A stretch of DNA of 64,000 nt from Macrostomum hystrix (lineage: Eukaryota; Animalia; Platyhelminthes), in NCBI GenBank assembly GCA_950097015.1, contig CATNEN010000018.1:124001-188000 (forward strand), read 5' to 3'. A model generated the notes under the pieces. The model searched no databases. It was not told the origin of the DNA and saw only the letters and a list, made by a program, of their open reading frames with translations. Shown here piece after piece: positions 3,906 to 59,894 of this stretch (positions within the stretch are counted from its first letter, which is position 1; each line of letters begins with the position of its first letter). A program made the position numbers and the translations under genes.

Positions 3906-4841
3906 CCGCGAATTTCAAAACCTAACTCAAAGCCCCAACCAAAACATTTCAACTGCTCTCCTAACAGCTCCATTTCAACCAGTGAAGCAGTGCAAACTCA
4001 TTCACCATGGCAACCATCTCACACTGAGTGCATCATATTTCTGGGATCGTGAGAGCTCTCAATCAGGCTTAGGATCTGTGCTCAAAGTGCCAGAGGAGTC
4101 AGAGCTGCTGCTGCGAAAATGTGTATTAAACTGGCTTCTAACAAGAAAGCATTTGGGCTATTCTCGCGCTCTGACCATAAAAAATGTTTAACGAACGCGC
4201 CCTAGCTACCAGAGACTCTGTGCTCAAAGGACATATGAGCACACTGTGAGCAGTCGCGGCATCCCACCCCAGCCTTCCCTGATGCGGTGCACTCGAGTGT
4301 CTGAGCAGGCTGAGCAGTGCTCTCCGCATATCAGGCAGGGAGAGGCTGTGTTGCTGCCCGATGAAAAGCTGCAGTCTGCTTCTTTAGCAGGCAGCGAGTT
4401 GAGCACAGTTTGTTACCTGAGCACAGTGGCAAAACATCAGGCTGCATACGGTAATGAGTCGCTAACAAAACTCAGTGAATTGAAGGCATTCGGCAGCACA
4501 ACGAGCGGTCAGAGATATAGAAATAAAATATGTGCTCATCTATTCTCAATGCAGCCTCTGCCTTCCCCTACTCTCGTCTCCGGGCAGTCCATTCCAGTCC
4601 CCGTGTTGGCCTCGGTTGCCAAGTGCCGACCTCCTCCCTCCAGCAGGTTTGAGCAGTTTTGCACTCGGTCTTAAGCTCTCTTCTGTTTTAAGCTGCTTTT
4701 AATGGCTCGACTTAACTTTTTTTATGCTTTTGAGATCAGTTTGATTGCTTGTAGACAGGTCCAGGTTGTAGCATGAGATCAGATTATATAGTACACCTTG
4801 GTACCAGAGCTTATGATATGGCAAAGTCTGTTTAGTCCCTC

Positions 4842-5710
4842 CTCTTCCCTCCTCTTCCCTCCTCTCCTCTCCTCTCCTCTCCTCTCCTCTCCTCTCCTCT
4901 CCTCTCCTCTCCTCTCCTCTTCCCTCCTCTCCTCTCTTCTGCTCCTCTCCTCTCCTCCTCTTCTCCTCTCCTCTTCTCCTCTTCTCTTCTCTCCTCTCCT
5001 TTTCTCCTCTCCTCCTCTTCTTTCCTCGCCTCCTCTTCTCTCCTCTCCTCTTCTCTTCTCCTCTCATCTGCTCTTCCCTCCTCTTCTTCTCTCCTCTCCT
5101 CTCCTTTTCCCCCTTCTCCTCGCCTCTTCCCTCCTCTTCCCTCCTCTCCTCTCCTCTTCCCTTTTCTCCTCTTCTCCTCTCCTCTCCTCTTCCCTCCTCT
5201 CATCTCCTCTTCCCTCCTCTTCCCTCCTCTCCTCTCCTCTTCCCTCCTCTCCTCTCTTCTCCTCCTCTCCTCCTCTTCTTCTCTACTCTTCTCCTCTCCT
5301 TTTCTCCTCTCCTCTCCTTTACTCCTCTCCTCCTCTCCTCTCCTCCTCTCCTCTCCTCTTCCCTCCTCTCCTCTCTTCTCCTCCTCTCCTCTCCTCCTCT
5401 TCTCCTCTCCTCTCCTCTCCTTTTCTCCTCTCCTCCTCTTCTCTCCTCTCCTCTCCTTTTCTCCTCTCTTCTCCTCTCCTCTCCTCCTCTTCTTCTCTCC
5501 TCCTCTCCTCTCCTCTTCTGTCCTCTCCTCTCCTTTTCTCCTCTCTTCTCCTCTCCTCTCCTCCTCTTCTTCTCTCCTCTTCTCCTCTCCTCTTCTCTCA
5601 CCTCCCCCCTCTCCTCTCTTCTCCTCCTCTTCCCTACTCTCCTCTCTTCTCCTCCTATTCCCTCCTCTCCTCTCCTATTCTCTCCTCTTCCCTCCTCTCC
5701 TTTCTTCTCC
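4842..5710. repeat. Polypyrimidine (CT-rich) microsatellite upstream of ANK-cGLR copy A
   Basis: Almost pure C/T (CTCCT/CTCTT units). Confidence 0.95.
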
Positions 5711-5847
5711 TGCAGCTCAACAGCCAATAAGCCTCCAGTAAACAAGGCTTCTGGCTGGCTGCAACGGAATGCAAAGGCAAAGTGTCTGGCTACTAAACTT
5801 TCTACCACATTTGCCACTTTCCTAACCCACAAGCAGACACCTGCAAA

Positions 5848-7235
5848 ATGTTTCCCTTACTCACAATACTCACGGCTGTCCTCGTGTACCTCATGAACTC
5901 ACTTCATTCCTCACACCACCGAGAAGACGCACAAGAACTCACCGACCAGGACCTCCTCGCAGCCATCAGAGACGACCGAGTGGAGCCCGTTCAGCGATTC
6001 ATTAACAGCGGCGGGAGCCTCGATACCTTCATCGCCTATGCAGACTCATTTTTTACTCCAGCAATGCTCGCTTGCCGATTCGGAAGACATGAAATTCTCG
6101 TGAGACTCATCCGAGCCATTGCAGATGTAGATAAGCAGAACTGGAGAGGGGCGACAGCATTGTGGATGGCATCACAATATGGTCACCACCGACTGGTGAA
6201 ATCACTCATCAAAGCACGAGCCGACGTCAATCTTCAAAGAAATACTGGCTCCTCACCTCTCTACATTGCATCACAAAATGGCCATAAGGACGTCGTCCAC
6301 TCACTCATCAAAGCACGAGCCGACGTCAATCTTCAAGAGAAAGTCTATGGCCGCTCACCTCTCTACATTGCAACACAATATGGCCACAAGGACGTCGTCG
6401 ACTCACTCATCAAAGCACGAGCCGACGTCAATCTTCAAACAAATACTGGCGAGTCACCTCTCTACATTGCATCACAGCAAGGCCATAAGGACGTCGTCAA
6501 CTCACTCATCAAAGCACGAGCCGACGTCAATCTTCAAAGAAATACTGGCTTCTCACCTCTCAACATTGCATCACAATATGGCCATAAGGACGTCATCGAC
6601 TCACTCATCAAAGCACGTGCCGACGTCAATCTTCAAAGAAATACTGGCTTCTCACCTCTCAACATTGCATCACAATATGGCCATAAGGACGTCATCGACT
6701 CACTCATCAAAGCACGTGCCGACGTCAATCTTCAAACAAATACTGGCTCCTCACCTCTCTACATTGCATCACAAAATGGCCATAAGGACGTCGTCCACTC
6801 ACTCATCAAAGCACGAGCCGACGTCAATCTTCAAGAGAAAGTCTATGGCTCCTCACCTCTCCACATTGCATCACAAAATGGCCATAAGGACGTCGTCCAC
6901 TCACTCATCAAAGCACGAGCCGACGTCAATCTTCAAGAGAAAGTCTATGGCTCCTCACCTCTCTACATTGCATCACAAAATGGCCATAAGGACGTCGTCC
7001 ACTCACTCATCAAAGCACGAGCCGACGTCAATATTCAAACAAATACTGGCTACTCACCTCTCTACATTGCATCACAAAATGGCCACCTCAGTGTTGTTGA
7101 GTCACTCATGAAGGTCGTTGATAGCCCAGAATTGCTGGAAGCTGCTCTGCGAATCGCCACGGAAGTTGGCCATGACCCAGTGGTTGACCTGCTGAGCCCT
7201 GGATCATCCGCGCCTCTGCCTGAGAAGCAGAACAG
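5848..7235 (+). CDS. ANK-cGLR gene copy A, exon 1: hydrophobic N-terminus plus 12 ankyrin repeats
   Basis: 33-34 aa repeats SPLxIASxxGHKDVVxSLIKARADVNLQ. The ORF 'stop' TAG lies inside the donor AACAG|GTAGGA (phase 2, exon ends at 7235). Confidence 0.92.
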
Positions 7236-7387
7236 GTAGGAGCTCCTGTTTCTCCTGTAAAAGTCACATGAGCAATGAGATAATTTGAGACTTCGGATTC
7301 TCTGAGTAATCAGACTCGAAATCTGATAGCTGAAGTTCGGAACTGATTGTGTGTCAGTTATTGTACATATAAAATATGATTTTGGAG

Positions 7388-8003
7388 AATTCACAGGTTT
7401 GGGATTTAATAATACAGGTTTGGGATTCAATATTACAGGTTTGGGATTTAATGTTACAGGTTTGAGATTAAATGTTACAGGTTTGAGATTTAATATTACA
7501 GGTTTGAGGTTTAATATTACAGGTTTGAGATTTAATATTACAGGTTTGAGGTTTAATATTACAGGTTTGAGATTTAATATTACAGGTTTGAGATTTAATA
7601 TTACAGGTTTGAGATTTAATATTACAGGTTTGAGATTTAATATTACAGGTTTGAGATTTAATATTACAGGTTTGGGATTTAATATAACAGGTTTGGAATT
7701 CAATATTACAGGTTTGAGATTCAATACTACAGGTTTGAGATTCAATACTACAGGTTTGAGATTCAATACTACAGGTTTGAGATTCAATATTACAGGTTTG
7801 AGATTTATATTATAGGTTTGAGATTTAATATTACAGGTTTGAGATTTTATATTCTAGGTTTGAGATTTAATATTTCAGGATTGAGATTTAATATTACAGG
7901 TTTGGGATTTAATATTACAGGTTTGAGATTTAATGTTACAGGTTTGAGATTTAATGTTACAGGTTTCGAATTCAATATTACAGGTTTGAGATTCAGTATT
8001 ACA
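7388..8003. repeat. 21-bp AT-rich minisatellite ATTTAATATTACAGGTTTGAG in intron 1
   Basis: About 29 units, absent from copy B intron 1. Confidence 0.95.
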
Positions 8004-8151
8004 GAAATAAAATATTGGATTTAGATTTCTTGAAATTGGCACATTCTGTCTGTTTAGTGTATTATTCGCAAAAAATCTGCCTACTAATTTTTTCAAAAGT
8101 GATACATCTTTCACATTCCTCGTTTCAACTATAGTTTTAGTTTCAATCCCA

Positions 8152-8604
8152 GTGAAACTCAGCACTGCCGCCTCCTCTCACCCTTCAGAGCCTCCCAGCC
8201 TCACTGAACCTCAGCACTGCCGCCTCCTCTCACCCTTCAGAGCCTCCCAGCCTCACTAAACCTCAGCACTGCCGCCTCCTCTCACCCTTCAGAGCCTCCC
8301 AGCCTCACTGAAACTCAGCACTGCCGCCTCCTCTCACCCTTCAGAGCCTCCCAGCCTCACTGAACCTCAGCACTGCCGCCTCCTCTCACCCTTCAGAGCC
8401 TCCCAGCCTCACTGAAACTCAGCACTGCCGCCTCCTCTCACCCTTCAGAGCCTCCCAGCCTCACTGAAACTCAGCACTGCCGCCTCCTCTCACACTTCAG
8501 AGCCTCCCAGCCTCACTGAAACTCAGCACTGCCGCCTCCTCTCACCCTTCAGAGCCTCCCAGCCTCACTGAACCTCAGCACTGCCGCCTCCTCTCACCCT
8601 TCAG
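8152..8604 (+). repeat. 52-bp tandem repeat containing the intron-1 splice acceptor (9 acceptor-like sites)
   Basis: CTCTCAC(C/A)CTTCAG ends at 8188, 8240, ... 8604 (period 52). Only the last is followed by the exon-2 frame. Confidence 0.9.
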
Positions 8605-8954
8605 AGCCGCACCCAGCGACGCAGAGCTGAGCCAGCAGCTGCACTCCAAGCTCTCTCAGTCGGGATTCGTGGACTCCAGAGCCGCCTTGCAGATCGCTGT
8701 GGCTGACGTCTTGCAGGATGTTCTCACGAAGAGATGGAACAATGACGACTGGTTCGCTGTGGGCAGCTTCTCTGAGGCCTGGGGCAACAGCCTGGTCTCT
8801 CTGGATGGCAGAACTGACATTGACTCTGACATCGATGTTATTCGGCTGATTCCAGGAAGGCCGATTCACCCGAGAGATTTGTGCGAGTGCGACCGAGTGG
8901 AGGCTGCTCAGACAGTGGAGCTCAGCAATGGCCACATCCTGAGCTCCGGATTCG
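8605..8954 (+). CDS. ANK-cGLR copy A, exon 2: nucleotidyltransferase catalytic core (GSFSEAWG...SDID)
   Basis: Acceptor CTTCAG|A completes AG+A = Arg in phase with exon 1. The exon reads AAPSDAELSQQLHSKLSQSGFVDSRAAL...WFAVGSFSEAWG...DSDIDV and ends at donor TTCG|GTGAGA (phase 1). Confidence 0.85.
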
Positions 8955-9413
8955 GTGAGAATTTCCTGTCAGAGACTGTCGGGATGGCTGGGACAAGAAT
9001 TGAACATGAGTTTGGCTTGCTCATCTTCTTTTGCTTTCTAAAGCAAACAACAAACAAGGAAAGCAAACAAATGTTCAGTCCAGGTTTGAAATGCAGAGCC
9101 AGAGCAAGAAATTTCCCAGCAAAAATGTAAACCCTGATTTTTCTTTCGGCGAGCTTCCTCTGGGAACCAAACAGAGGCTTAGCGCTCCTCGCTCAGTGTA
9201 CTTAGTGAATAGTGATGCTATATTATGTATTCATTGTACATACTGACTTTTATAAGCCAAAATCTAATATCCTATATTCGCTATAAACTGTTAGTTAACT
9301 AGCAATGTAAGCCCATCTTCGGGGAGCCCAGACGATTCAATCAAGTTTCTCTTTGTTTCTTAGGCTCGCAATACTTCCACAGTCACAGGTGTGTAAAATT
9401 ACAGTTTTTGAGG

Positions 9414-9490
9414 TGACCGCCCCAGTCCATGGACTGAACCGTTGTACACAGCTTTTGGAAGCGTCGTACAAACGCTACGGCTGGGCCATT
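9414..9490 (+). mobile_element. Tc1/mariner transposase remnant in intron 2
   Basis: Reads *PPQSMD*TVVHSFWKRRTNAT, which converts to WPPxSxDLNPLxYSFW with three compensating 1-bp indels. Confidence 0.5.
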
Positions 9491-10105
9491 GCAAATTTCG
9501 GTTATTTCTATTATATTATATTCTATTGCCGCTTTTACAGAATTCGTTTTCTGTGATTCTGAAATTATGCCAATCAATGTCCATTGATTTTCAACAATAT
9601 TCCGAACAGCCAATTCTTACTAGCCATATAGTAGCTAGTTATCCAGTAGACAGGAAAATTATCCTAATTTATGTGGGCGGGAAAACCCCCGCCGCAGGAA
9701 AATCCCATCGAATTTCCAGTCCAGATTTGAATCTCGGCCTGAGGGAACGATGCTTGTCCAAGAGCTGGAATCATAACCTTGTATTTATTCAGCTCAGCCA
9801 GCTGAAGGTTACACTAGAAATTTGAGGGGGCTGGTGACTCCCCAGTACAAAGACTGAAGAGCTGTATACAGTACTCACAAAATACTCATAAGAAACTAAA
9901 GAAGCAAGGAAGAATTGAAAATAATCGTGAACGTGCTCCCCTCCGTAGGGGGCAAAAGTTTCTAGTCTGCACTAAAATTTCATATAAATCGCAGCTACAA
10001 ACCATCTTTGCACAATTTTTTTATATTATCGAGAAATAGTTCTGTGTCTATCAACTTGAAATCTGATGGCATTTTGCATATTTCTTGCATTTCCTTTTTC
10101 TCCAG

Positions 10106-11718
10106 CTTCCAACCCAGCCGACACTCAACGAGGCTCCGCCCTGAGACCGTCTGTGGACCAAGTCACCGCCCGCCGCCTCTGCCGCTACCCTCCCATCGCG
10201 CCGCTGCAGCCACCAAGAGTCTCCAACTCCAACATCCCCCAGTCCGTGCTGCAGTCGCTCGAGCGAGACCTCACCGCTGACTCATCGCCCTGTCACGTGG
10301 TGCACGCAGCTCCTCCCGGAATGGGGGGCCAGCAGCTCCGAGTGAGCAGCAGCTTCCTGGAGAGGCGACTGCTGCGAAGTCTCAGCACTCTGCAAGGCCA
10401 GCTGTTCGTCACACTCAAGTGGCTGCTGAAGAAGAAAATCTCAAACGTCGGCTTCAAGTCCTATCACGCAAAGACCGTCACGTTCCGAATGCTGGAGGAG
10501 ACACCTGCTGAGCAGTGGAAGCCGGAGAATCTCGTGAGACTCACGACACGCTCGCTGAAGATTTTGCTGGACGGTGTGGAGAGCGGCTGCAGATCAGACA
10601 CACCTGACGGTCGGATCCTGGAGCACTTCTTCCTGAGCGATGCCGCTGTGTACCTGAAGGGCTTGAAGTCAGCTGAGAGAGTGAGCGAAGCGTTGAATCG
10701 GGCAGCCGGCGCATTGAGTGACGCCATGGCTGAGCTGCCTCAGCTGCTGCTGCAGTTCGAGGACAGTCTGCGACCCGTCACCGACTCGGGCCGATTCCAC
10801 TTCCACCCGTTCCTCATCCTGCCTCTACTCAATGACCGACCCGTGTCAGAAGCCAAGACATGCGAGTTCCACGAGATCTACGACATCGTGAGAGAGTCCG
10901 TGCTTCGTCTGTCCGATGGAGACCGCAGCCCGCAGTCCCGAGAGAGTCTCGCAGAGCTGATCAACAAACTGCCAGACTGCGCCCGATCAGCGCGAGAGTC
11001 TCTCAGAGCGCTGGCCTGCCTGAAGTTCGGCGACAGACGCACTGCTGAAAAAGTTGTGAGCGACTGCGGGCAGTTCAGTGCGAGCAGAGGCATCGATTGG
11101 GGAGCTGAGAGGTCGGCGAGTGAGGCCACTGCGGACTTTGTGTGGCAGCACCTGAAGAGCCGAGACTCCGCCTGGAAATTCTGCTTGGAGTTTGACGAGC
11201 GACCGAAGCTGCCGATTGAGCACGAAGTCTTTGCCGACTGCTTTCCGCTGCTGATTAACTACAGCACATACTTCTACCTGAACTTTGACGCTCTGCTGCG
11301 GGCTCTTTGCAATGAGCTGACAGTAGCAGGAGACGCGAGCGATCAGGACTGGATCCGGGATGTGGCTCAGAGGGAGGATGCGGATGAGCAGGAGCTGCTG
11401 GTGGCTGCGGCGATCTGCGGAGATCTGGAGCTGCTGCGGCGGCTGCGCAGAAGAATCACTCACGAGCTGTGCCGGCTGCCAGGGTGGCTGCAGCAGAAGA
11501 TTGAGAGGCTGAGCAGTCAAGGTGAAGATCGCCAAAACCAAGGTGAAGATCGCCAAGACCAAGGTGAAGATCGCCAAGACCAAGGTGAAGATCGCCAAGA
11601 CCAAGGTGAAGATCGCCAAGACCAAGGTGAAGATTGCCAAGACCAAGGTGAAGATCGCCAAGACCAAGGTGAAGATCGCCAAGACCAAGGTGAAGATCGC
11701 CAAGACCAAGGTGAATAA
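10106..11718 (+). CDS. ANK-cGLR copy A, exon 3: Mab-21/cGAS-like C-terminal part plus helical extension and QGEDRQD repeats
   Basis: Acceptor TTTTTCTCCAG|CT gives G+CT = Ala, in phase. Motifs are SVDQVTA (third carboxylate), [28 protein letters not shown] and LEHFF. The spliced CDS is 1388+350+1613 = 3351 nt = 1116 aa. Confidence 0.88.
11518..11715 (+). repeat. 21-bp coding repeat (QGEDRQD)x9
   Basis: Unit is CAAGGTGAAGATCGCCAAGAC. Copy B has about 1.5 units. Confidence 0.95.
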
Positions 11719-11981
11719 GCATTTGAGCATTCGAGTCGGAGTCAACTTGCATTCCAAGAAAGAAAAACCAGTTGTGGATCCAAATGCTGCCGGTGCTGTG
11801 TGTGTTTGTGACCCTAAAGTGGATGCCAAGAAGACGATTCAACCAGAAAATCAGAAAACACATTTTAACAGAAATTCTACGATCGACTGCAAAGCCATGA
11901 AAAATATGGATATGAAAACGGGCCTCAAATCCTGCAGCTCGGACGCCGCCCTCCGCCATTTCCACAAAATTAATATAGAAA

Positions 11982-14900
11982 TTCAGGCCAGTGACCATTA
12001 AACTTCAGGCCAGTGACTATCGAAATTCAGGCCAGTGACCATTAAACTTCAGGCCATTGACCATTAAACTTCAGGCCAGAGACCATCGAAATTCAGGCCA
12101 GTGACCATTAAACTTCAGGCCAGAGACCATCGAAATTCAGGCCATTGACCATTAAACTTCAGGCCAGTGACTATCGAAATTCAGGCCAGTGACCATTAAA
12201 CTTCAGGCCATTGACCATTAAACTTCAGGCCAGTGACCATCGAAATTCAGGCCAGAGACCATTAAACTTCAGGCCATTGACCATTAAACTTCAGGCGAGA
12301 GACCATCGAAATTCAGGCCAGTGACCATTAAACTTCAGGCCAGAGACCATCGAAATTCAGGCCATTGACCATTAAACTTCAGGCCAGTGACTATCGAAAT
12401 TCAGGCCAGTGACCTACCAACTTATGGGCCAGTGATCATCGAACTTCAGGCCAGTGACAATCGAACTGCAGGCCAGTGACCATTGAACTTCAGCCTCGTG
12501 CTTTGTGAGTGAGTCCTACCTCCTCAGGCCAGTGACAATCGAACTTCAGGCCAGTGACTATCGAACTTTAGGCCTGTGATAATCGAACTTCAGGCCAGTG
12601 ACCATCGAACTTCAGGCCAGTGACCATTGAACTTCAGGCCAGTGACTATTGAACTTCAGCCTCGTGCTTTCTGAGTGAGTCATGTCTCCTCAGGCCAGTG
12701 ACCTACCAACTTATGGGCCAGTGATCATCGAACTTCAGGCCAGTGACAATCGAACTGCAGGCCAGTGACCATTGAACTTCAGCCTCGTGCTTTGTGAGTG
12801 AGTCCTACCTCCTCAGGCCAGTGACAATCGAACTTCAGGCCAGTGACTATCGAACTTTAGGCCTGAGATAATCGAACTTCAGGCCAGTGACCATCGAACT
12901 TCAGGCCAGTGACCATTGAAATTCAGGCCAGTGACTATTGAACTTCAGCCTCGTGCTTTCTGAGTGAGTCATGTCTCCTCAGGCCAGTGACCTACCAACT
13001 TATGGGCCAGTGATCATCGAACTTCAGGCCAGTGACAATCGAACTGCAGGCCAGTGACCATTGAACTTCAGCCTCGTGCTTTGTGAGTGAGTCCTACCTC
13101 CTCAGGCCAGTGACCATCGAACTTCAGGCCAGTGACCATCGAACTTCAGGCCAGTGACCACTGACCAGTGACCAGTGACTATTGAACTTCAGCCTCGTGC
13201 TTTGTGAGTGAGTCCAACCTCCTCAGGCCAGTGACCGAATAACATCAGGCCTGTGACCATCGAACTTCAGTCTCGTGCTTGGGGAGTGAGTCCTACCTTC
13301 CCAGGCCAGTGACCAAATAACTTCCGGCCAGTGACTATCAAACTTCAGGCCAGTGACCATCGAACTTCAGTCTCGTGCTTTGTGAGTGAGTCCTACCTCC
13401 TTAGGCCAGTGACCTAATAACTTCAGGCCAGTGACTATCAAACTTCAGGCCAGTGACTATCAAACTTCAGGCCAGAGACCATCGAACTTCAGGCCAGCGA
13501 CCATCGAACATCAGGCTCGTGCTCTTTTAGTGAGTCCTACCTCCTCAGGCCAGTGACCATCGAACTTCAGGCTCGTGCTTTGTGAGTGAGTCTTGCCTTC
13601 TCAGGCCAGTGACTTTCAAACTTCAGGCCAGTGACCATCTAACTTCAGGCCAGTGACCATCTAACTTCAGGCCAGTGACCATCTAACTTCAGGCCAGTGA
13701 CCATCGAACTTCAGTCTTGTGCTTTGTGAGTGAGTCCTACCTCCTTAGGCCAGTGACCTAATAACTTCAGGCCAGTGACTATCGAACTTCAGGCCAGTGA
13801 CCATCGAACTTCAGGCAAGTGACCATCGAACTTCAGGCTCCTGCTTTGTGAGTGAGTCATGCCTCCTCAGGCCAGTGACCTACCAACTAATGGGCCAGTG
13901 ACCATCGAACTTCAGGCCAGTGAATATCGAACTTCAGGCCAGTGACCATTGAACTTCAGCCTCGTGCTTTCTGAGTGAGACCTACCTCCTTAGGCCAGTG
14001 ACCTAATAACTTCAGGCCAGTGACTATCGAACTTCAGGCCAGAGACCATCGAACTTCAGGCCAGTGACTATCGAACTTCAGGCCAGAGACCATCGAACTT
14101 CAGGCCAGTGACCATCGAACTTCAGGCTCCTGCTTTGTGAGTGAGTCCTACCTCCTCAGGCCAGTGACTGTCGTACTTCAGGCCAGAGACCATCGAACTT
14201 CAGGCTCCTGCTTTGTGAGTGAGTCCTACCTCCTCAGGCCAGTGACTGTCGTACTTCAGGCCAGAGACCATCGAACTTCAGGCTCCTGCTTTGTGAGTGA
14301 GTCCTACCGCCTCAGGCAAGTGACCATCGAACTTCAGGCTCGTGCTTTGTGAGTGAGTCATGCCTCCTCATGCCAGTGACTTTCAAACTTCAGGCCAGTG
14401 ACTATCTAACTTCAGGCAAGTGACCATCGAACTTCAGGACAGTGACCATCGAACTTCAGGCTCGTGCTTTGTGAGTGAGTCCTACCTCCTCAGGCCAGTG
14501 ACTGTCGTACTTCAGGCCAGAGACCATCGAACTTCAGGCTCCTGCTTTGTGAGTGAGTCCTACCGCCTCAGGCAATTGACCATCGAACTTCAGGCTCGTG
14601 CTTTGTGAGTGAGTCTTACCTGCTCAGGCCAGTGACTCTTGAACTTCAGGCCAGAGACAATCGAACTTCAGGCAAGTGACCATCGAACTTCAGGCCAGTG
14701 ACCATCGAACATCAGGCTCGTGCTCTTTTAGTGAGTCCTACCTCCTCAGGACAGTGACCATCGAACTTCAGGCTCGTGCTTTGTGAGTGAGTCCTACCTC
14801 CTTAGGCCAGTGACCATTGAACTTCAGCCTCGTGCTTTCTGAGTGAGTCCTACCTCCTTAGGCCAGTGACCTAATAACTTCAGGCCAGTGACTATCGAAC

Positions 14901-17900
14901 TTCAGGCCAGAGACCATCGAACTTCAGGCCAGTGACTATCGAACTTCAGGCCAGTGACTATCGAACTTCAAGCTCGTGCTTTGTGAGTGAGTCATGCCTC
15001 CTCATGCCAGTGACTTTCAAACTTCAGGCCAGTGACTATCGAACTTCAGGACAGAAAACATCGAACTTCAGGCAAGTGACCATCGAACTTCAGGCCAGTG
15101 ACCATCGAACATCAGGCTCGTGCTCTTTTAGTGAGTCCTACCTCCTCAGGACAGTGACCATCGAACTTCAGGCTCGTGCTTTGTGAGTGAGTCATGCCTT
15201 CTCAGGCCAGTGACTTTCAAACTTCAGGCCAGTGACTATCGAACTTCAGGCCAGAGACCGTCGAACTTCAGGCCAGTGACAATCGAACTTCAGTCTCGTG
15301 CTTTGTGAATGAGTCCTACCTCCTCAGGCCAGTGACCATCGAACTTCAGGCCAGTGACCATTGAAATTCAGGCCAGTGACTATTGAACTTCAGCCTCGTG
15401 CTTTCTGAGTGAGTCATGTCTCCTCAGGCCAGTGACCTACCAACTTATGGGCCAGTGATCATCGAACTTCAGGCCAGTGACAATCGAACTGCAGGCCAGT
15501 GACCATTGAACTTCAGCCTCGTGCTTTGTGAGTGAGTCCTACCTCCTCAGGCCAGTGACAATCGAACTTCAGGCCAGTGACTATCGAACTTTAGGCCTGA
15601 GATAATCGAACTTCAGGCCAGTGACCATCGAACTTCAGGCCAGTGACCATTGAAATTCAGGCCAGTGACTATTGAACTTCAGCCTCGTGCTTTCTGAGTG
15701 AGTCATGTCTCCTCAGGCCAGTGACCTACCAACTTATGGGCCAGTGATCATCGAACTTCAGGCCAGTGACAATCGAACTGCAGGCCAGTGACCATTGAAC
15801 TTCAGCCTCGTGCTTTGTGAGTGAGTCCTACCTCCTCAGGCCAGTGACCATCGAACTTCAGGCCAGTGACCATCGAACTTCAGGCCAGTGACCACTGACC
15901 AGTGACCAGTGACTATTGAACTTCAGCCTCGTGCTTTGTGAGTGAGTCCAACCTCCTCAGGCCAGTGACCGAATAACATCAGGCCTGTGACCATCGAACT
16001 TCAGTCTCGTGCTTGGGGAGTGAGTCCTACCTTCCCAGGCCAGTGACCATCGAACTTCAGGCCAGTGACTATCGAACTTCAGGCTCGTGCTTTGTGAGTG
16101 AGTCATGCCTCCTCAGGCCAGTGACCTACCAACTTATGGGCCAGTGACCATCTAACTTCAGGCCAGTGAATATCGAACTTCGGGCCTGTGGCCATTGAAC
16201 TTCAGCCTCGTGCTTTCTGAGTGAGTCCTACCTCCTTAGACCAGTGACCTAATAACTTCAGGCCAGTGACTATCAAACTTCAGGCCAGTGACCATCGAAC
16301 TTCAGTCTCGTGCTTTGTGAGTGAGTCCTACCTCCTAAGGTCATTGACTATCGAACTTCAGGACAGTAATCATCGAACTTCAGGCTCGTGCAATGTGAGT
16401 GAGTCCTATCTCCTCAGGCCAGTGACCTAATAACTTCAGGCCAGTGACCATCGAACTTCAGGCCAGTGAATATCGAACTTCAGGCCTGTGGCTATCGAAC
16501 TTAAGGCCAGTGACCATCGAACTTCAGGCCAGTGACCATTGAACTTCAGCCTCGTGCTTTCTGAGTGAGTCCTACCTCCTTAGGCCAGTGACCAAATAAC
16601 TTCCGGCCAGTGACTATCAAACTTCAGGCCAGTGACCATTGAACTTCAGCCTCGTGCTTTCTGAGTGAGTCCTACCTCCTTAGGCCAGTGACCAAATAAC
16701 TTCCGGCCAGTGACCATCGAACTTCAGTCTCGTGCTTTGTGAGTGAGTCCTACCTCCTTAGGCCAGTGACCTAATAACTTCAGGCCAGTGACTATCAAAC
16801 TTCAGGCCAGTGACTATCAAACTTCAGGCCAGAGACCATCGAACTTCAGGCCAGCGACCATCGAACATCAGGCTCGTGCTCTTTTAGTGAGTCCTACCTC
16901 CTCAGGCCAGTGACCATCGAACTTCAGGCTCGTGCTTTCTGAGTGAGTCTTGCCTTCTCAGGCCAGTGACTTTCAAACTTCAGGCCAGTGACCATCTAAC
17001 TTCAGGCCAGTGACCATCTAACTTCAGGCCAGTGACCATCTAACTTCAGGCCAGTGACCATCGAACTTCAGTCTTGTGCTTTGTGAGTGAGTCCTACCTC
17101 CTTAGGCCAGTGACCTAATAACTTCAGGCCAGTGACTATCGAACTTCAGGCCAGTGACCATCGAACTTCAGGCAAGTGACCATCGAACTTCAGGCTCCTG
17201 CTTTGTGAGTGAGTCATGCCTCCTCAGGCCAGTGACCTACCAACTTATGGGCCAGTGACCATCGAACTTCAGGCTCCTGCTTTGTGAGTGAGTCATGCCT
17301 CCTCAGGCCAGTGACCTACCAACTTATGGGCCAGTGACCATCGAACTTCAGGCCAGTGAATATCGAACTTCAGGCCAGTGACCATTGAACTTCAGCCTCG
17401 TGCTTTCTGAGTGAGACCTACCTCCTTAGGCCAGTGACCTAATAACTTCAGGCCAGTGACTATCGAACTTCAGGCCAGAGACCATCGAACTTCAGGCCAG
17501 TGACTATCGAACTTCAGGCCAGAGACCATCGAACTTCAGGCCAGTGACCATCGAACTTCAGGCTCCTGCTTTGTGAGTGAGTCCTACCTCCTCAGGCCAG
17601 TGACTGTCGTACTTCAGGCCAGAGACCATCGAACTTCAGGCTCCTGCTTTGTGAGTGAGTCCTACCGCCTCAGGCAAGTGACCATCGAACTTCAGGCTCG
17701 TGCTTTGTGAGTGAGTCATGCCTCCTCATGCCAGTGACTTTCAAACTTCAGGCCAGTGACTATCGAACTTCAGGCAAGTGACCATCGAACTTCAGGACAG
17801 TGACCATCGAACTTCAGGCTCGTGCTTTGTGAGTGAGTCCTACCTCCTCAGGCCAGTGACTGTCGTACTTCAGGCCAGAGACCATCGAACTTCAGGCTCC

Positions 17901-18777
17901 TGCTTTGTGAGTGAGTCCTACCGCCTCAGGCAATTGACCATCGAACTTCAGGCTCGTGCTTTGTGAGTGAGTCTTACCTGCTCAGGCCAGTGACTCTTGA
18001 ACTTCAGGCCAGAGACAATCGAACTTCAGGCAAGTGACCATCGAACTTCAGGCCAGTGACCATCGAACATCAGGCTCGTGCTCTTTTAGTGAGTCCTACC
18101 TCCTCAGGACAGTGACCATCGAACTTCAGGCTCGTGCTTTGTGAGTGAGTCCTACCTCCTTAGGCCAGTGACCATTGAACTTCAGCCTCGTGCTTTCTGA
18201 GTGAGTCCTACCTCCTTAGGCCAGTGACCTAATAACTTCAGGCCAGTGACTATCGAACTTCAGGCCAGAGACCATCGAACTTCAGGCCAGTGACTATCGA
18301 ACTTCAGGCCAGTGACTATCGAACTTCAAGCTCGTGCTTTGTGAGTGAGTCATGCCTCCTCATGCCAGTGACTTTCAAACTTCAGGCCAGTGACTATCGA
18401 ACTTCAGGACAGAAAACATCGAACTTCAGGCAAGTGACCATCGAACTTCAGGCCAGTGACCATCGAACATCAGGCTCGTGCTCTTTTAGTGAGTCCTACC
18501 TCCTCAGGACAGTGACCATCGAACTTCAGGCTCGTGCTTTGTGAGTGAGTCATGCCTTCTCAGGCCAGTGACTTTCAAACTTCAGGCCAGTGACTATCGA
18601 ACTTCAGGCCAGAGACCGTCGAACTTCAGGCCAGTGACAATCGAACTTCAGTCTCGTGCTTTGTGAATGAGTCCTACCTCCTCAGGCCAGTGACCATCGA
18701 ACTTCAGGCCAGTGACCATCGAAGTTCAGGCCACTGACCATCGAACTTCAGGCCACTGACCATTGAACTTTAGGCAA
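11982..18777. repeat. 6.8-kb complex satellite: 22-bp unit GAACTTCAGGCCAGTGACCATC plus a 56-bp variant, with higher-order repeats
   Basis: Period is 22 at the start. There is a 289-bp higher-order repeat (12413, 12702, 12991; 15436, 15725) and a 3358-bp block duplication (14420/17778, 14932/18290). Confidence 0.95.
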
Positions 18778-19497: not shown

Positions 19498-19871
19498 TTC
19501 GCTAACCCAGATCCCTAACCCTGATCCCAAACACTGATCCCCAAACCTAATCACAAACCCTGATCCCTAAAAAAATCCCGGCCACCAAAGGCTGAAAATC
19601 TGATCCCGAAACGATAATAAAGTTCCCTACCCAAATCCCGATTATCGAAGCGTCATCCCGAAACCTGATCCTGGCCCTCGATCCCAAATCCCCATGCAGC
19701 CTTTGAATATGTGATCAATCGAGTAGCCTATCAAACCTGATCCATCATTTTTGAGTCAGTTGCCATAGCAACAAGAACTCCAGCCCCCCAGAGTCCATTG
19801 GAGAAGCCGGGGAATCTTCAGTAAGTTGAGCACTCATATCAGGCAGAGGCTTTGAGCAAATCAGGCGGCCA

Positions 19872-21898
19872 ATGGGAGATGGAGAAAGAGAGAATGGCAG
19901 ATGGAGACAGAGAGAATGGCAGATGGAGACAGAGAGAATGGCAGATGGAGACAGAGAGAATGGCAGATGGAGACAGAGAGAATGGCAGATGGAGACAGAG
20001 AGAATGGCAAATGGAGACAGAGAGAAAGGCAGATGGAGACAGAGAGAATGGCAGATGGAGACAGAGAGAATGGCAGATGGAGACAGAGAATGGGAGATGG
20101 AGACAGAGAGAATGGCAGATGGAGACAGAGAGAATGGCAGATGGAGACAGAGAGAATGGCAAATGGAGACAGAGAGAATGGCAGATGGAGACAGAGAGAA
20201 TGGCAGATGGAGACAGAGAATGGCAGATGGAGACAGAGAGAATGGCAGATGGAGACAGACAGAATGGCAGATGGAGACAGAGAGAATGGCAGATGGAGAC
20301 AGAGAGAATGGCAGATGGAGACAGAGAGAATGGCAGATGGAGACAGAGAGAATGGCCGATGGAGACAGAGAATGGCAGATGGAGACAGAGAATGGCAGAT
20401 GGAGACTGAGAATGGCAGATGGAGACAGAGAATGGCAGATGGAAACAGAGAATGGCAGATGGAGACAGAATGGCAGATGGAGACAGAATGGCAGATGGAG
20501 ACAGAGAATGGCAGATGGAGACAGAATGGCAGATGGAAACAGAGAATGGCAGATGGAGACAGAGAGAATGGTAGATGGAGACAGAATGGCAGATGGAGAC
20601 AGAGAGAATGGCAGATGGAGACAGAGAGAATGGCAGATGGAGACAGACAGAATGGCAGATGGAGACAGAGAGAATGGCAGATGGAGACAGAGAGAATGGC
20701 AAATGGAGACAGAGAGAATGGCAGATGGAGACAGAGAATGGCAGATGGAGACAGAGAATGGCAGATGGAAACAGAGAATGGCAGATGGAGACAGAATGGC
20801 AGATGGAGACAGAGAATGGCAGATGGAGACTGAGAATGGCAGATGGAGACAGAGAATGGCAGATGGAAACAGAGAATGGCAGATGGAGACAGAATGGCAG
20901 ATGGAGACAGAATGGCAGATGGAGACAGAGAATGGCAGATGGAGACAGAATGGCAGATGGAAACAGAGAATGGCAGATGGAGACAGAGAGAATGGTAGAT
21001 GGAGACAGAATGGCAGATGGAGACAGAGAGAATGGCAGATGGAGACAGAGAATGGCAGATGGAGACAGACAGAATGGCAGATGGAGACAGAGAGAATGGC
21101 AGATGGAGACAGAGAGAATGGCAAATGGAGACAGAGAGAATGGCAGATGGAGACAGAGAGAATGGCAAATGGAGACAGAGAGAAAGGCAGATGGAGACAG
21201 AGAGAATGGCAGATGGAGACAGAGAATGGGAGATGGAGACAGAGAGAATGGCAGATGGAGACAGAGAGAATGGCAGATGGAGACAGAGAGAATGGCAAAT
21301 GGAGACAGAGAGAATGGCAGATGGAGACAGAGAGAATGGCAGATGGAGACAGAGAATGGCAGATGGAGACAGAGAGAATGGCAGATGGAGACAGACAGAA
21401 TGGCAGATGGAGACAGAGAGAATGGCAGATGGAGACAGAGAGAATGGCAGATGGAGACAGAGAATGGCAGATGGAGACAGAGAGAATGGCAGATGGAGAC
21501 AGAATGGCAGATGGAGACAGAATGGCAGATGGAGACAAAGAATGGCAGATGGAGACAGAATGGCAGATGGAAACAGAGAATGGCAGATGGAGACAGAGAG
21601 AATGGCAGATGGAGACAGAATGGCAGATGGAGACAGAATGGCAGATGGAGACAGAATGGCAGATGGAAACAGAGAATGGCAGATGGAGACAGAGAGAATG
21701 GCAGATGGAGACAGAATGGCAGATGGAGACAGAATGGCAGATGGAGACAGAATGGCAGATGGAGACAGAGAGAATGGCAGATGGAGACAGAGAGAATGGC
21801 AGATGGAGACAGAGAATGGCAGATGGAGACAGAGAATGGCAGATGGAGACAGAATGGTAGATGGAGACAGAGAGAATGGCAGATGGAGACAGAGAATG
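19872..21898. repeat. 18-22-bp minisatellite GAATGGCAGATGGAGACA(GA)n
   Basis: About 100 units. It produces the spurious 660-730 aa ORFs on both strands. Confidence 0.95.
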
Positions 21899-21939
21899 GG
21901 AGGGCACGGCAGCAGCTGAGCACAATGCCAGTTAATTAA

Positions 21940-22962: not shown

Positions 22963-24407
22963 CTAAATGAACATACAAAACATAGAAATTAAAATCTTTT
23001 ATTTTAATCCCTTATCCCAGATCCCGAATCCTGAAGTCTGAATACTCAACAGCTTTCTTATTCCTTACCAAATATGCTCAAATGCTCAACCATTCAACTG
23101 AAGCCTGTTCCTGAATCAAAAAAGATCCCAAACCTCGTGACCCATCTCGAATGGGATTTGTTTAACAGGTTTATTCGCAGATTTATCAGAAAATTGCTTT
23201 CAGCAGCTGTTATCACCTGACCAAATAGCACTGGCTTATTTGCAATGTATTTTATGTCTATGGCTAAACCTATCTAAGCAGTGTGATTTTCTCTTCACTG
23301 TCCGTCCATGCTTCAGCTCATGCGGCTGCTTAAATGTTAATTAAACTGGCTGCTAACATTTGAGCAGTGTTGCTTTTTTTATTTCAAGCAGTCTTTTCAG
23401 AAGTTGCTGATCTTTACAAGGCCAATGATTTTAGTTTTGTTTTGTCATTGGCACAGCAGCTGCTATTGTTCAGTGAGCACCACTACACTTGTCTCAAAGG
23501 GCAATTCTGAGCACACTGTGAGCAGTCTCAGCTGCAGCCACCCCAGCCTCCTCAGATGCGGTTCAGGAGAGCCTTTGAAAAAGCATTCTCAAGCAGACAA
23601 TGAGTTGAGCACAGCTTAAATATATTCAGTTGTTAATGTATCAAGTTGTTAATAAAATATATAATTACATCAATTTGAATACTGTTGTTATCTAATTTAA
23701 ATGCCATATTCACCATGAGGCTCAAGTATGCTCAAGTATGCTCACTTCTTAACAATGTTACAGTAAGAATTTGCTTTGTATTTTTTATTTGAATTCAAAC
23801 GATTAACTTTGATATGGTGAATTTATCTTGCATGCTTTCATTCTACGCTTGTAATATGTAAGTCTGCTGTTTCTATGTGAGTATTCTCATCCAGCAGGGT
23901 GGGCTGCAGTTTTGTTGTTGTGCATAAGTGGCAGGTTGGCATGCAAGACAAGCTCAAAGACTGCAGGTTTGGCTGAGCATTGCTTGCGTTAGATCGCTTT
24001 GGACAGACTGGAGTCTATTCTCAATCCAGCCTCTTCCTTCCCCTACTCTCGTCTCCGCGCAGTCCATTCCAGTCCCCGTGTTGGTCTCGGTTGCCAAGGG
24101 CCGCATATCGACCTCCTCCCTCCAGCAGGTTTGAGCAGTTTTGCACTCGGCCTGGAGCTCTCAGCGTGGCCCGCCTGACTGGCGCCCTTTGGCTGCGTTT
24201 TTACCTGCGGGAGGGTCTCATTGCTGTGCTGGGTTGGCGCCCAGATACTGAGTGTGCTCAAGTTAATTACAGCCTCAATTTCTGCTCACAGCTGGTTAAT
24301 TTTTCTGTCTCTCTTCAGCTACTGTTTTGAGCTCCTTTTTGAGGCCTGACTCAACATTCTCTCTGCCGTGCTGATGCTTTAGGATTGCAAAATTGAATTC
24401 TGGGATG

Positions 24408-25400
24408 TGAGGGGAGAAACAGACAGAGGTGAGGGGAGAAACAGACAGAGGTGAGGGGGAGAAACAGACAGAGGTGAGGGGAGAAACAGACAGAGGTGAG
24501 GGGAGAAACAGACAGAGGTGAGGGGAGAAACAGACAGAGGTGAGCGGAGAAACAGACAGAGGTGAGGGGAGAAACAGACAGAGGTGAGCGGAGAAACAGA
24601 CAGAGGTGAGGGGAGAAACAGACAGAGGTGAGCGGAGAAACAGACAGAGGTGAGGGGAGAAACAGACAGAGGTGAGCGGAGAAACAGACAGAGGTGAGGG
24701 GGGAGAAACAGACAGAGGTGAGGGGAGAAACAGACAGAGGTGAGGGGGGAGAATGAGACAGAGGTGAGGGGGGAGAAACAGACAGAGGTGAGGGGAGAAA
24801 CAGACAGAGGTGAGGGGAGAAACAGACAGAGGTGAGGGGAGAAACAGACAGAGGTGAGGGGAGAAACAGACAGAGGTGAGGGGGGAGAAACAGACAGAGG
24901 TGAGGGGAGAAACAGACAGAGGTGAGGGGGGAGAAACAGACAGAGGTGAGGGGAGAAACAGACAGAGGTGAGGGGGAGAAACAGACAGAGGTGAGGGGAG
25001 AAACAGACAGAGGTGAGGGGGAGAAACAGACAGAGGTGAGGGGGAGAAACAGACAGAGATGAGGGGGAGAAGCAGACAGACGTGAGGGGGGAGAAACAGA
25101 CAGAGGTGAGGGGGGAGAAACAGACAGAGGTGAGGGGAGAAACAGACAGAGGTGAGGGGGAGAAACAGACAGAGGTGAGGGGAGAAACAGACAGAGGTGA
25201 GGGGGAGAAACAGACAGAGGTGAGGGGGAGAAACAGACAGAGATGAGGGGGAGAAGCAGACAGACGTGAGGGGGGAGAAACAGACAGAGATGAGGGGGAG
25301 AAGCAGACAGACGTGAGGGGGGAGAAACAGACAGAGGTGAGGGGGAGAAACAGACAGAGGTGAGGGGGGAGAAACAGACAGACGTGAGGACAGAAGCAGA
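24408..25400. repeat. 22-24-bp minisatellite GAGGGG(GG)AGAAACAGACAGAGGT
   Basis: About 43 units. Confidence 0.95.
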
Positions 25401-26322
25401 CAGAAAGCAGTCAGCAAAAAGGCGGGAAAAGGTGAGAAAAAGCCATTAGTTTTGTTTGAGCACTCGATATTTTTTGGACTTGCAGCCTCAGAAATTATGG
25501 GGGGGGGCAGGTCACCACCAAAAAGCAGACTGGATTCTGCTCACATCGAGTTGAGCATGGCCCTGTCTGAGCACAATTAATCAGAGAGGCTGTAACTAAT
25601 GGGTCAGCCACCCCACTCCCATCCAGAGGCATTGTGCTGAGGGTTTTCCGAGCACAATGGGCAGTCACAGCTTCTAAAACTGCGGCCTGGGCAAGAGACA
25701 CTAACTGAGTTGGGCTGAGAATGAGTTATGTATTTTATGAGTTTGAGAACATTCAAAGCTATTGTTTAGAGAGCCACCGCTTCCTACCAGAGACCCTGTG
25801 CTCAAGGGGCTTCTGAGCACACTCAGTGCATTCTGTGGCATAGAAGCCGTGTTGCAAGCCGAGAAAATGCGGCAGAATTTTATTTCCAGACACCGAGTTG
25901 AGCACAGTTGAGTCACTGAACTCACTGAATTAAAGGGCCTTAGCAACACAATGAAGCTGAGACAGAGCTAAACTGGCTGCTCATTGTATGGGGTGCACTG
26001 GCTCTGAGCATGGTCCGCAGTTTCTGTACAATTCGCAGCCTCTCCTGACGGCCCTCCCCGCTCGGAGGCGAAGGCGCTGAGCCCGTGGCAGCAGCGGCCG
26101 CTCACACGTTGCCTCGCAGACTCCAGCTCGGGCCTGCCTTCTTCGACACAATGGGCCTGTGCGACTCACCCACCTCCCTCCGCTGTGATGAGGCTGCAGC
26201 TGCAGCCGTTCACAGACTCCACTCCTCTGCTCTCTATTCTCTGCTTTGACTGCTCGATTTGAGAATGGTCTCACATTGGATAAGCTGTGCAGGTGCATTT
26301 CCACCACAACTTCAGATTGATA

Positions 26323-27388
26323 GATGAGGGGAGAAACAGACAGAGGTGAGGGGAGAAACAGACAGAGATGAGAGGAGAAACAGACAGAGGTGAGGGGAGA
26401 AACAGACAGATGTGAGGGGGAGAAACAGACAGACGTTAGGGTGGAGAAACAGACAGAGATGAGGGGAGAAACAGACAGAAATGAGGGGAGAAACAGACAG
26501 AGGTGAGGGGAGAAACCGACAGAGATGAGGGGAGAAACAGACAGAGATGAGGGGAGAATCAGACAGAAATGAGGGGAGAAACAGACAGAGATGAGGGGAG
26601 AAACAGACAGAGATGAGGGGAGAAACAGACAGAAATGAGGGGAGCAACAGACAGAGGTGAGGGAGAAACAGACAGAGATGAGGGGAGAAACAGACAGAAA
26701 TGAGGGGAGAAACCGACAGAGATGAGGGGAGAAACAGACAGAGATGAGGGGAGAATCAGACAGAAATGAGGGGAGAAACAGACAGAGATGAGGGGAGAAA
26801 CAGACAGAGATGAGGGGAGAAACAGACAGAAATGAGGGGAGCAACAGACAGAGGTGAGGGAGAAACAGACAGAGATGAGGGGAGAAACAGACAGAAATGA
26901 GGGGAGAAACAGACAGAGATGAGGGGAGAAACAGACAGAGGTGAGGGGAGAAACAGACAGAGGTGAGGGGAGAAACCGACAGAGATGAGGGGAGAAACAG
27001 ACAGAGATGAGGGGAGAATCAGACAGAAATGAGGGGAGAAACAGACAGAGGTGAGGGAGAAACAGACAGAGGTGAGGGAGAAACAGACAGAGATGAGGGG
27101 AGAAACAGACAGAAATGAGGGGAGCAACAGACAGAGATGAGGGGAGAAACAGACAGAGATGAGGGGAGAAACAGACAGAAATGAGGGGAGAAACAGACAG
27201 AGATGAGGGGAGAAACAGACAGAGATGAGGGGAGAAACAGACAGAAATGAGGGGAGAAACAGACAGAGATGAGGGGAGAAACAGACAGAGATGAGGGGAG
27301 AAACAGACAGAAATGAGGGGAGAAACAGACAGAGGTGAGGGAGAAACAGACAGAGGTGAGGGAGAAACAGACAGAGGTGAGGGGAGAA
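26323..27388. repeat. 22-bp minisatellite, expanded relative to 725..1070
   Basis: About 48 units versus about 15 in the other copy. Confidence 0.95.
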
Positions 27389-28015
27389 AAGTTTCAAAGC
27401 ATGCAGAGGAGAATCTGAGAAAAGACTCAATTGTGTTGTTGCCAGGCCAATAGAAATTTCTGTGCTCACTAAAAGTTTTCTTTTGCTCTCGCAGCCTCAG
27501 AAAATTTCAGTTTCACAGCACAATTATTCGGAGGCTATAACCAGCCGCCAGCCACCCCATTAGCAGCCAAAGGCATTGTGCTGAGAACTTCCGCAGCCGT
27601 CACAGCTTCTCAAGCTTTGGCCATAGCAACGGAAAAATTTGATCACTTTGAGTACAGTTGGTGAGTGCCTGCCTGCCCCCAGTCCGCTGCGCTTCTAATT
27701 AGGGTTTGGTGACCCCCAGTCCATGGACTGAACAGCTGACAGCAGACTTTGGAAGTCGCTGGCTGCACATCTGGCCCATCTAGACTGGGTGTCTTCTCCA
27801 TCTGCTCAAATCAGGATGCCAAAAAACTGTCTAAACCTCGCGGCAGTTGATGAAAGGTTAGTGAACCGAGTCAGCTTCACTTCACGGTGTCTCAAATTTG
27901 ATCCCAAATCCCGTTTCTGAACGGCAAACAAAAGCCGGCTAATCCCGAAACTCCGATAGCTGAACAGCTAACAGATTCCGAATCAGAACTCGATCTTACA
28001 GCTGGGCGAGAAACC

Positions 28016-47456: not shown

Positions 47457-48229
47457 GCCTAGACCGAAGTCAATACACAGTTTGAGGTTGTCGCCTTACA
47501 TATTTTCTATATTCTTTGAGACATCAGGCTATTGACTATTAGCTTACTATTAGCTAGAAATTGTTTTAGACAACGCCTTTTAGACTATTTAGGAACACAA
47601 AAAATAATGAATTACCAAAATAGGAAGGTGTTGTCTTTAAGGAATACTAATGAGCAAAATATAAAGGAAATTTTATTTTTCAATGATTTCCTATTACTAA
47701 GCTGGTGTAACCAATGCGATGGACCTTGCGATGAGCTGAATCCCCCGAGTTTACTGGGACTTTAACTTAAACAACCGCAATGTACGCGATAGAAGCGTGT
47801 GCTGTCTCTCAATGCCTGTTTTACAGTACACAAATCAATTTTATTTTGCTAGTCTAATTTGTACGAGACAAGTGCGCCTGTCATCGAATCTTATTAGCAG
47901 AGTCAGTTTACTGCTACTACCACACTGTATGCTATAGAATGGTCTGCTGCGTTTCTCTACCTGTAACTCATAAAATATATTGTCTACTTCGCTTTTGCTA
48001 GTGATTGTAACTACGCCTGCCACTTCATTCATGCGATTCCCTATACCTGTACTCCTCGAAATGCTGGTAGCTGTCAGAGACTAAATGGAACTCAGCGCCA
48101 CCTATAATCTGTCAATCGATAAAGCTAATCAGTGATAAGATTACTTTGCGTGCAGATATGCCCATGAAGTACTCATTTACATGAAGTTAAGCAAATTCTC
48201 TGATTTCAGAAATTTACTTTCGAGGAAGA

Positions 48230-52654: not shown

Positions 52655-52776
52655 ATCTCTGTTTTCTGGCAACAAAATTTGCTTTGTGTGTTATAATTGC
52701 TTTTACAGAACTACTTCCAATGCAGTTTAGCATAACTTCACTGCTAATTTTGGCCTTGATTCCAACATTGCTTAAT

Positions 52777-59715: not shown

Positions 59716-59894
59716 TGCCGCCTCCTCTCACCCTTCAGAGCCTCCCAGCCTCACTGAACCTCAGCACTGCCGCCTCCTCTCACCCTTCAGAGCCTCCCAG
59801 ACTCACTGTAACTCAGCACTGCCGCCTCCTCTCACCCTTCAGAGCCTCCCAGCCTCACTGAAACTCAGCACTGCCGCCTCCTCTCACCCTTCAG
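59716..59894 (+). repeat. 52-bp acceptor-containing repeat, copy B (4 acceptor-like sites)
   Basis: AG ends at 59738, 59790, 59842 and 59894. Confidence 0.9.

Follow-up and report, generated by a model that had tools for sequence, protein, structure and literature searches.

We analysed a window of 64,000 nucleotides from the flatworm Macrostomum hystrix (contig CATNEN010000018.1, positions 124,001 to 188,000), to which all coordinates below refer. At 5848-11718 on the + strand it carries what is very probably an expressed three-exon gene of macrostomid ANK-cGLR type, that is, an ankyrin array fused to a cGAS-like receptor (cGLR), which encodes a protein of 1116 amino acids (aa) with a probably active enzyme that the ankyrin face may gate. 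Exon 1 would provide the ankyrin module, and exons 2 and 3 together a complete cGAS/Mab-21 nucleotidyltransferase fold followed by a family-specific C-terminal domain. The enzyme would make a nucleotide second messenger under the control of the ankyrin array, whose concave, rapidly evolving face would bind a partner or ligand other than a nucleic acid. The ANK-cGLR family may thereby represent a set of germline-encoded pattern-recognition receptors. Reading at the level of single open reading frames (ORFs) misses this whole expanded, immune-type gene family in the genome. The exon layout, i.e., an ankyrin exon followed by two enzyme exons, serves to annotate the sister genes.

Gene structure and splicing

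The gene comprises three exons on the + strand, 5848-7235, 8605-8954, and 10106-11718, separated by two GT..AG introns. Exon 1 ends in CAGAACAG, followed from 7236 on by the donor GTAGGA; exon 2 is preceded by CCCTTCAG and ends in GGATTCG before the donor GTGAGA; exon 3 is preceded by TTCTCCAG. Lengths of 1388 nt and 350 nt for the first two exons yield intron phases 2 and 1, and the joined coding sequence of 3351 nt translates into 1116 aa and a single terminal stop, with 0 internal stops. The exon coordinates, the GT donor, both phases, and the 1116-aa frame had been proposed in an initial annotation of the window and were confirmed at the bases.

Exon 1 (5848-7235), backed by Pfam matches, its donor, and transcript contigs, encodes a hydrophobic N-terminus, a capping region, and ten ankyrin repeats. 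The repeats end near aa 455 and the exon two bases into codon 463; intron 1 is positioned exactly at the boundary of the ankyrin and enzyme domains. The start of the cGLR is located on exon 2 (8605-8954), which comprises the N-terminal spine helix, G516-S517, an insert, D538-x-D540, and a His/Cys cluster. Exon 3 divides into the remainder of the cGAS-like core (10106-10767), backed by profile alignments and the fold match, a C-terminal domain specific to the family and some 250 aa long (10768-11517), and a (QGEDRQD)n tail (11518-11718), an in-frame tandem array of 9.4 units of 21 bp with the stop codon at 11716-11718.

Four public sequencing runs were compared with positions 5800-11750 with respect to contig depth and joins. 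Runs X7 and X8 cover the three exons deeply but leave 7392-8386, 8984-9381, and 9581-9978 at zero depth, an exon-only distribution and thus the pattern of cDNA. A contig of X8 joins 7232 to 8602, with GT..AG ends when the cut is shifted by +3 to 7235/8605. Contigs of X7 ending at 7235 continue into AGCCGCACCCA, the start of exon 2, and in an X7 contig starting at 8602 the letters before this point read TGCCTGAGAAGCAGAA, with which exon 1 ends. Both runs contain contigs that link 8954 with 10132 and carry 26 replaced letters reading CCTCCAACCCAGCC; this is the 8954/10106 splice in an allele or a near-identical paralogue. Comparable spliced loose ends occur in the metatranscriptome X2. The transcript contigs therefore carry both the exon 1/exon 2 and the exon 2/exon 3 join, in good accordance with the earlier claim that three seemingly separate ORFs are one spliced gene.

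Intron 1 (7236-8604, phase 2) consists mostly of two tandem arrays, 29 units of 21 bp at 7393-8004 and 8.8 units of 52 bp at 8153-8608, and has zero transcript depth at 7392-8386. An acceptor-like CACCCTTCAG recurs through the 52-bp array, the last unit of which is the actual acceptor. At 8387-8585, transcript depth is about 4-11 as compared to 60-200 in the exons, which could reflect occasional use of an acceptor in an upstream unit, or a paralogue. Intron 2 (8955-10105, phase 1) contains a short transcribed stretch at 9382-9580 with a depth of about 62 in X7 and X8, where contigs depart from the window at 9420 and 9452. Positions 5000-12500, which include this stretch, have no match in Rfam; the stretch is probably a dispersed repeat expressed elsewhere.

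Relatives in Macrostomum lignano

The nearest database proteins are from Macrostomum lignano in every case. They are 65-69% identical and align gap-free over both joins of the spliced protein, with KQNR/AAPSDAELSQQLH versus DRAAPSDNDLSQQLH at join 1 and SSGF/A/SNPA versus SPGYASRPA at join 2. Full-length M. lignano homologues of 1117-1168 aa share the domain order of copy 1, among them P0021 with 1117 aa. The P0021 locus shows a matching three-exon layout with a middle exon of 116 codons, and a second such gene follows 3.7 kb downstream. Transcripts, colinear homologues, and intron positions conserved in M. lignano together support a model in which the ankyrin exon and the two enzyme exons are one spliced ANK-cGLR gene. 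According to a census, 38 of 58 family representatives have ankyrin repeats. The family of our gene is large and specific to Macrostomum, with ankyrin-bearing members in the majority.

Some M. lignano relatives join several domains with the cGLR, namely P0078 (positions 6001-9651 of a locus on NIVC01002235.1), P0088, and P0081. The P0078-type gene combines a domain of the cGLR family with ankyrin repeats and a caspase (Peptidase_C14); its introns are short, and it needs only 3.65 kb to encode 1099 aa. P0081 comprises WSC, ANK, cGLR, and RING domains. On the bolder reading considered below, the cGLR-ANK-caspase fusions would hint that the receptor is coupled directly to a death effector. Fusions of a cGLR with a caspase were not found in the literature.

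The enzyme core

The catalytic residues are G516-S517 (8762-8767), D538-I539-D540 (8828-8836), and the third Asp D597 in SVDQV (10156-10158). Exon 3 adds the contact motifs R658/S660/E665 (LRVSSSFLE), K684, and S698-Y699-H700-x-K702 (SYHAKT), and also H753-F-F755 (LEHFF). All Pol-beta/Mab-21/cGAS-family motifs listed by the initial annotation are present, and so is the 20-aa spacer between GS and DxD. This spacer measures 11 aa in cGAS and is longer here because of a conserved, family-specific insert of 8-9 residues. Among 40 paralogues, the Gly is kept in 39, the Ser in 38, and the three Asp in 37, 35, and 34, respectively; both copies in the window have all five. The catalytic and nucleotide-contact motifs (GS, DxD, third Asp, R/S/E/K/SYHxK) are kept in paralogues down to 24% identity. 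The open frame and its motif set are far beyond chance expectation: both joins occur in transcripts, depth is zero over most of both introns, and the motifs recur in the 40 paralogues.

Taken singly, the pieces of the enzyme part reveal little similarity to known families. In phmmer searches against PDB, exon 3 matches cGAS marginally (E 0.15) and exon 2 gives noise, such that family profiles were needed. PF20266 matches 30 of the 40 paralogue domains at E <=0.001, and PF03281 none of them (0/40). A profile of the 40 paralogue domains finds cGAS (2e-7) and the coral Sp-cGLR1 (7e-7) in PDB. For a profile-profile comparison with hhalign we used Pfam-confirmed Mab-21 proteins of molluscs, which are distant matches of an exhaustive search and carry both Pfam Mab-21 models. 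They align with the 40-paralogue profile over the entire core with a probability of 99.9% and an E-value of 4e-31; GS, SDxD, and D.V.A share columns, with 8 additional residues behind GS in the flatworm sequences. The merged profile retrieves cGLR1 (6e-24), cGAS (1e-20), MB21D2 (9e-15), and MAB21L1 (1e-13) from PDB, and its columns pair SDiDv with NEFDV, avDlvtAl with SVDIILAL, RvStsflE with RLSFSHTE, and SYHaKT with SYHVKT of cGAS.

For structure prediction, residues 517-1105 of the paralogue P0021 (67% identical) were folded with the 40-sequence alignment. The AlphaFold model reaches a mean predicted local distance difference test score (pLDDT) of 92.2 and a predicted template modelling score (pTM) of 0.92. 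The best 50 Foldseek matches in PDB are all cGAS, with E-values down to 1.9e-8. VIA-align gives Z 14-15 over 254-280 aligned residues for MAB21L1, MB21D2, cGAS, Sp-cGLR1, and Cv-cGLR1, covering model residues 1-336, the best match being MAB21L1 with Z 15.3. The profile-profile comparison, the profile search of PDB, and the predicted fold thus support the assignment of the C-terminal part of the protein to the cGAS/Mab-21 family, as had been read earlier from the motifs. The two conditions under which the initial annotation would have failed, a lack of spliced reads and a fold unlike cGAS, both turned out in its favour. PADLOC, which holds models of bacterial CD-NTases, gave no match, and the ESM Atlas contributed Mab-21_C clusters at scores <0.9, which we treat as leads only.

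Given that G, S, D, D, and D are kept in 34-39 of 40 paralogues and in both copies, the protein is likely an active nucleotidyltransferase producing a nucleotide second messenger.

Additional parts of the protein

From about residue 800 onwards, the 40 paralogues share a conserved domain of some 250 aa, with the motifs HPF, LPDCA..ARE.LRAL..LKFG, DSAWKFC, and NFDALL. Its model (290 residues including the last core helices, pLDDT 90) is mostly helical with a small sheet. Against PDB, the domain gave neither a sequence match nor a fold match (best Foldseek E 0.31), and comparison with the C-terminal extensions of mollusc cGLRs gave no profile match. In the AlphaFold DB it is found in M. lignano relatives only; hints to mollusc Mab-21 proteins are weak (probability 0.8-0.9, template modelling score <0.4).

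Exon 2 encodes the conserved cluster H551/C556/C558/H573 (H-x4-C-x-C-x14-H), a possible metal site or zinc knuckle. Both copies of the gene begin with MFPLLTILTAVL(V/L)YLM, a run of 16-18 hydrophobic residues with a Kyte-Doolittle mean of 2.27 (5848-5901 and 57914-57967). Of the M. lignano paralogues, some share this N-terminus (P0025, P0024, P0022) and others do not; it might act as a signal anchor.

A second copy in the window

A second intact copy, encoding 1055 aa, is located at 57914-62727 on the + strand, with exons at 57914-59193, 59895-60244, and 61190-62727. Its junction sequences are identical to those of copy 1, as had been noted before, its catalytic residues are the same, and its array consists of nine ankyrin repeats. 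A maximum-likelihood tree groups the two copies as sisters (100/100) and the pair as sister to six M. lignano paralogues, which places the window in a Macrostomum-like flatworm other than that of the annotated M. lignano assembly. Copies 1 and 2 are recent tandem copies: their introns are 97-98% identical, the ankyrin exon only 89-92%.

The 21-bp tail array has about 1.5 units in copy 2 as compared to 9.4 in copy 1, and the transcript contigs diverge from the window at 11541, inside this array. Consequently, the (QGEDRQD)n expansion of copy 1, which is missing from copy 2 and the transcripts, is recent, and it may be allele-specific.

The ankyrin array as a putative sensor

Pfam Ank_2 matches exon 1 with an E-value of 1.4e-176 in 11 stretches, and ten repeats of 33/34 aa are listed. 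Per-position entropy over the ten repeats of copy 1 and the nine of copy 2 reveals a nearly invariant scaffold. Variable positions are 6-8, 11, 15, 19-20, 23, and 27, i.e., the beta-turn and first-helix face, which is the surface ankyrin proteins use for binding. Between copies 1 and 2, the ratio of nonsynonymous to synonymous substitution rates (dN/dS) amounts to 1.53 for the array, against 0.06 for the first 100 aa; elsewhere it ranges from 0.6 to 2 with few changes. The enzyme core is acidic, with an isoelectric point (pI) of 6.44; cGLRs sensing nucleic acids (dsDNA/dsRNA) have a pI >8.5 (Li et al. 2023, 10.1101/2023.02.22.529553). A role of the array as sensor of a non-nucleic-acid ligand is plausible, as it fits the variability of the binding face, the dN/dS of 1.5, the stronger divergence of the ankyrin exon than of the introns between copies, the frequency of ankyrin repeats in the family (38/58), and the acidic core. 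The same data equally allow an adaptor or auto-inhibitory role.

The foremost rival explanation accordingly accepts the enzyme and regards the ankyrin array as a module for adaptor function, localisation, oligomerisation, or auto-inhibition, with the ligand bound by the core or the C-terminal domain. The characterised cGLRs all bind their ligand at the enzyme core (Li et al. 2023), the C-terminal domain is conserved and predicted to form a rigid unit with the core (pTM 0.92), and some relatives show the adaptor-like order of a cGLR, then ANK, then a caspase domain. However, variability concentrated on the canonical binding face together with a dN/dS >1 would sooner be expected of a recognition surface than of an adaptor that stays fixed, and the acidic core argues against the usual nucleic-acid ligands. 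We consider this explanation possible, with the odds against it.

A scaffold or binding protein of Mab-21 type without enzymatic activity, like MAB21L1 or MID49/51 and possibly membrane-anchored by its hydrophobic N-terminus, is improbable in our view. MAB21L1 is the best VIA-align match (Z 15.3), and activity is reported for none of the relatives. The first 16-18 residues are hydrophobic, recalling the membrane anchor that MID49/51 have. On the other side stands the retention of GS, DxD, third Asp, and the R/S/E/K/SYHxK motifs down to 24% identity, and Mab21L1-3 are without a predicted functional active site (Li et al. 2023).

That the three ORFs are separate or decaying and the gene is a reading-frame accident, as the many spurious long ORFs of this satellite-rich region might suggest, is rejected as exceedingly improbable, being refuted by the M. 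lignano alignments, the transcript joins, and the exon layout and intron positions in M. lignano, next to 1116 stop-free codons and an intact second copy.

Several points weigh against the preferred reading, an expressed ANK-cGLR gene with an active, ankyrin-gated enzyme. On its own, exon 3 matches PF20266 (Mab-21_C) with E 0.0034 and 17.9 bits, below the cut-off of 24.1, and has no PF03281 match. The predicted structure is that of the paralogue P0021, not of the window protein. Differences of a few per cent separate the transcript contigs from the window, such that they may stem from a different allele or strain or from a paralogue that is nearly identical; the joins thus hold for copy 1 or its closest kin, not strictly for copy 1. 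The dN/dS values derive from two copies of a repeat array only, in which unequal repeat exchange can mimic selection. Finally, biochemical activity is reported for no family member, and the five cloned M. lignano relatives are unnamed in the main text of Li et al. 2023.

A bolder form of the preferred reading, which we offer tentatively and hold to be rather doubtful, regards the family as a germline DARPin-like repertoire. Its arrays would diversify at the binding face, gain and lose repeats, detect pathogen proteins or other non-nucleic-acid ligands, and switch on the cGAS-like enzyme, and the receptor of the messenger need not be STING. On STING in Macrostomum, no paper was found in the literature. 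In the Platyhelminthes, TLRs are reported lost, and cGLRs are reported lost in most members. A ligand is known for no repeat-fused cGLR, and no paper later than Li et al. 2023 on the function of ankyrin-cGLR fusions was found in the literature. With many recent copies, variable ankyrin faces, and M. lignano amenable to RNA interference, the family is a practical place to ask about cGLR sensing beyond nucleic acids.

Genomic surroundings and occurrence

Polypyrimidine arrays lie directly upstream of both copies, (CTCCT)n over 0.9 kb at 4838-5711 for copy 1 and (TCTCT)n over 5 kb at 52776-57766 for copy 2. The 46 kb between the copies (11978-57766) are nearly all tandem repeats. A 22/100/144-bp satellite family occupies 11978-18775; further along lie two arrays of 22-bp units (19871-21899 and 24407-27389), a (CTCTT)n array at 42056-47057, and a 51-bp array at 48222-50087, among others. 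The remaining long ORFs in the window are satellite translations with no Pfam family.

The metatranscriptomes X2-X4 and X6, labelled as outdoor, wastewater, and sediment, contain 5-21% of all exact 31-mers from exon 3, which points to the organism itself, or a very near relative, living in such samples.

Comparison with known systems

Li et al. 2023 (Cell; 10.1101/2023.02.22.529553) surveyed about 3000 animal cGLRs, 87% of which are stand-alone enzymes. Some carry TPR or ankyrin modules, with ANK-cGLR fusions as a class of their own (Fig. 1C), ankyrin and death-domain fusions occur in a coral, and many cGLRs are inactive with nucleic-acid ligands. Macrostomum is unmentioned in the main text; however, Table S2 of the same study assigns Ank_2 to the M. 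lignano proteins PAA45980.1, PAA86972.1, and PAA68676.1. Hence, the ANK-cGLR architecture, including its occurrence in Macrostomum, has been in the literature since 2023, and the novelty implied by the initial annotation is not supported. As far as we found, new features are the C-terminal domain without a match among solved structures, the possible zinc knuckle, and the hydrophobic N-terminus. Descriptive additions are an exon layout whose intron 1 falls on the domain boundary, a recent tandem duplication in which the ankyrin exon evolves faster, the C-terminal domain, and the conserved insert together with the Cys/His cluster in the catalytic lobe.

The M. lignano ANK-cGLRs share family and architecture with the gene described here, and PAA45980.1 corresponds to P0053 (936 aa) in our family alignment. 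Five M. lignano cGLR domains were cloned for the screen of Li et al. 2023, with constructs starting just after the ankyrin part; they share the GSxxEGWG...SDxD signature with our gene. In contrast, the present gene stems from another genome, its nearest M. lignano relatives being 65-69% identical and its two copies sister to six of their paralogues, and the 2023 study gives for the M. lignano proteins neither gene structure nor activity nor ligand, its constructs being ankyrin-less. The cnidarian fusions (Li et al. 2023, Fig. 4C) likewise place an ankyrin module on a cGLR core, for which the authors propose a role in protein or ligand interaction. There, three of 42 cGLRs are ankyrin fusions, whereas in the Macrostomum family the fusion is dominant (38/58) and a C-terminal domain is added.

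With cGAS, Sp-cGLR1 (8gjy), Cv-cGLR1 (8gjw), and human MB21D2 (7lt1), the family shares the two-lobed fold (Z about 14 over 260-280 residues), and with cGAS and cGLR1 also GS, the acidic triad, RxSxSxxE, K, and SYHxKT. It differs from the cGAS group in the insert between GS and DxD, the acidic core (pI 6.4), and the added ankyrin array and C-terminal domain. The possible H-x4-C-x-C-x14-H knuckle is situated where cGAS has none, and the zinc ribbon of cGAS was not found in the alignments.

NLR-type and other repeat-sensor receptors (LRR, ANK, TPR) likewise combine a variable repeat array with a signalling domain in an expanded, tandem-duplicated family. The Macrostomum proteins have no NACHT or NB-ARC ATPase, and their output would be a nucleotide messenger; the likeness is thus a functional analogy rather than membership.

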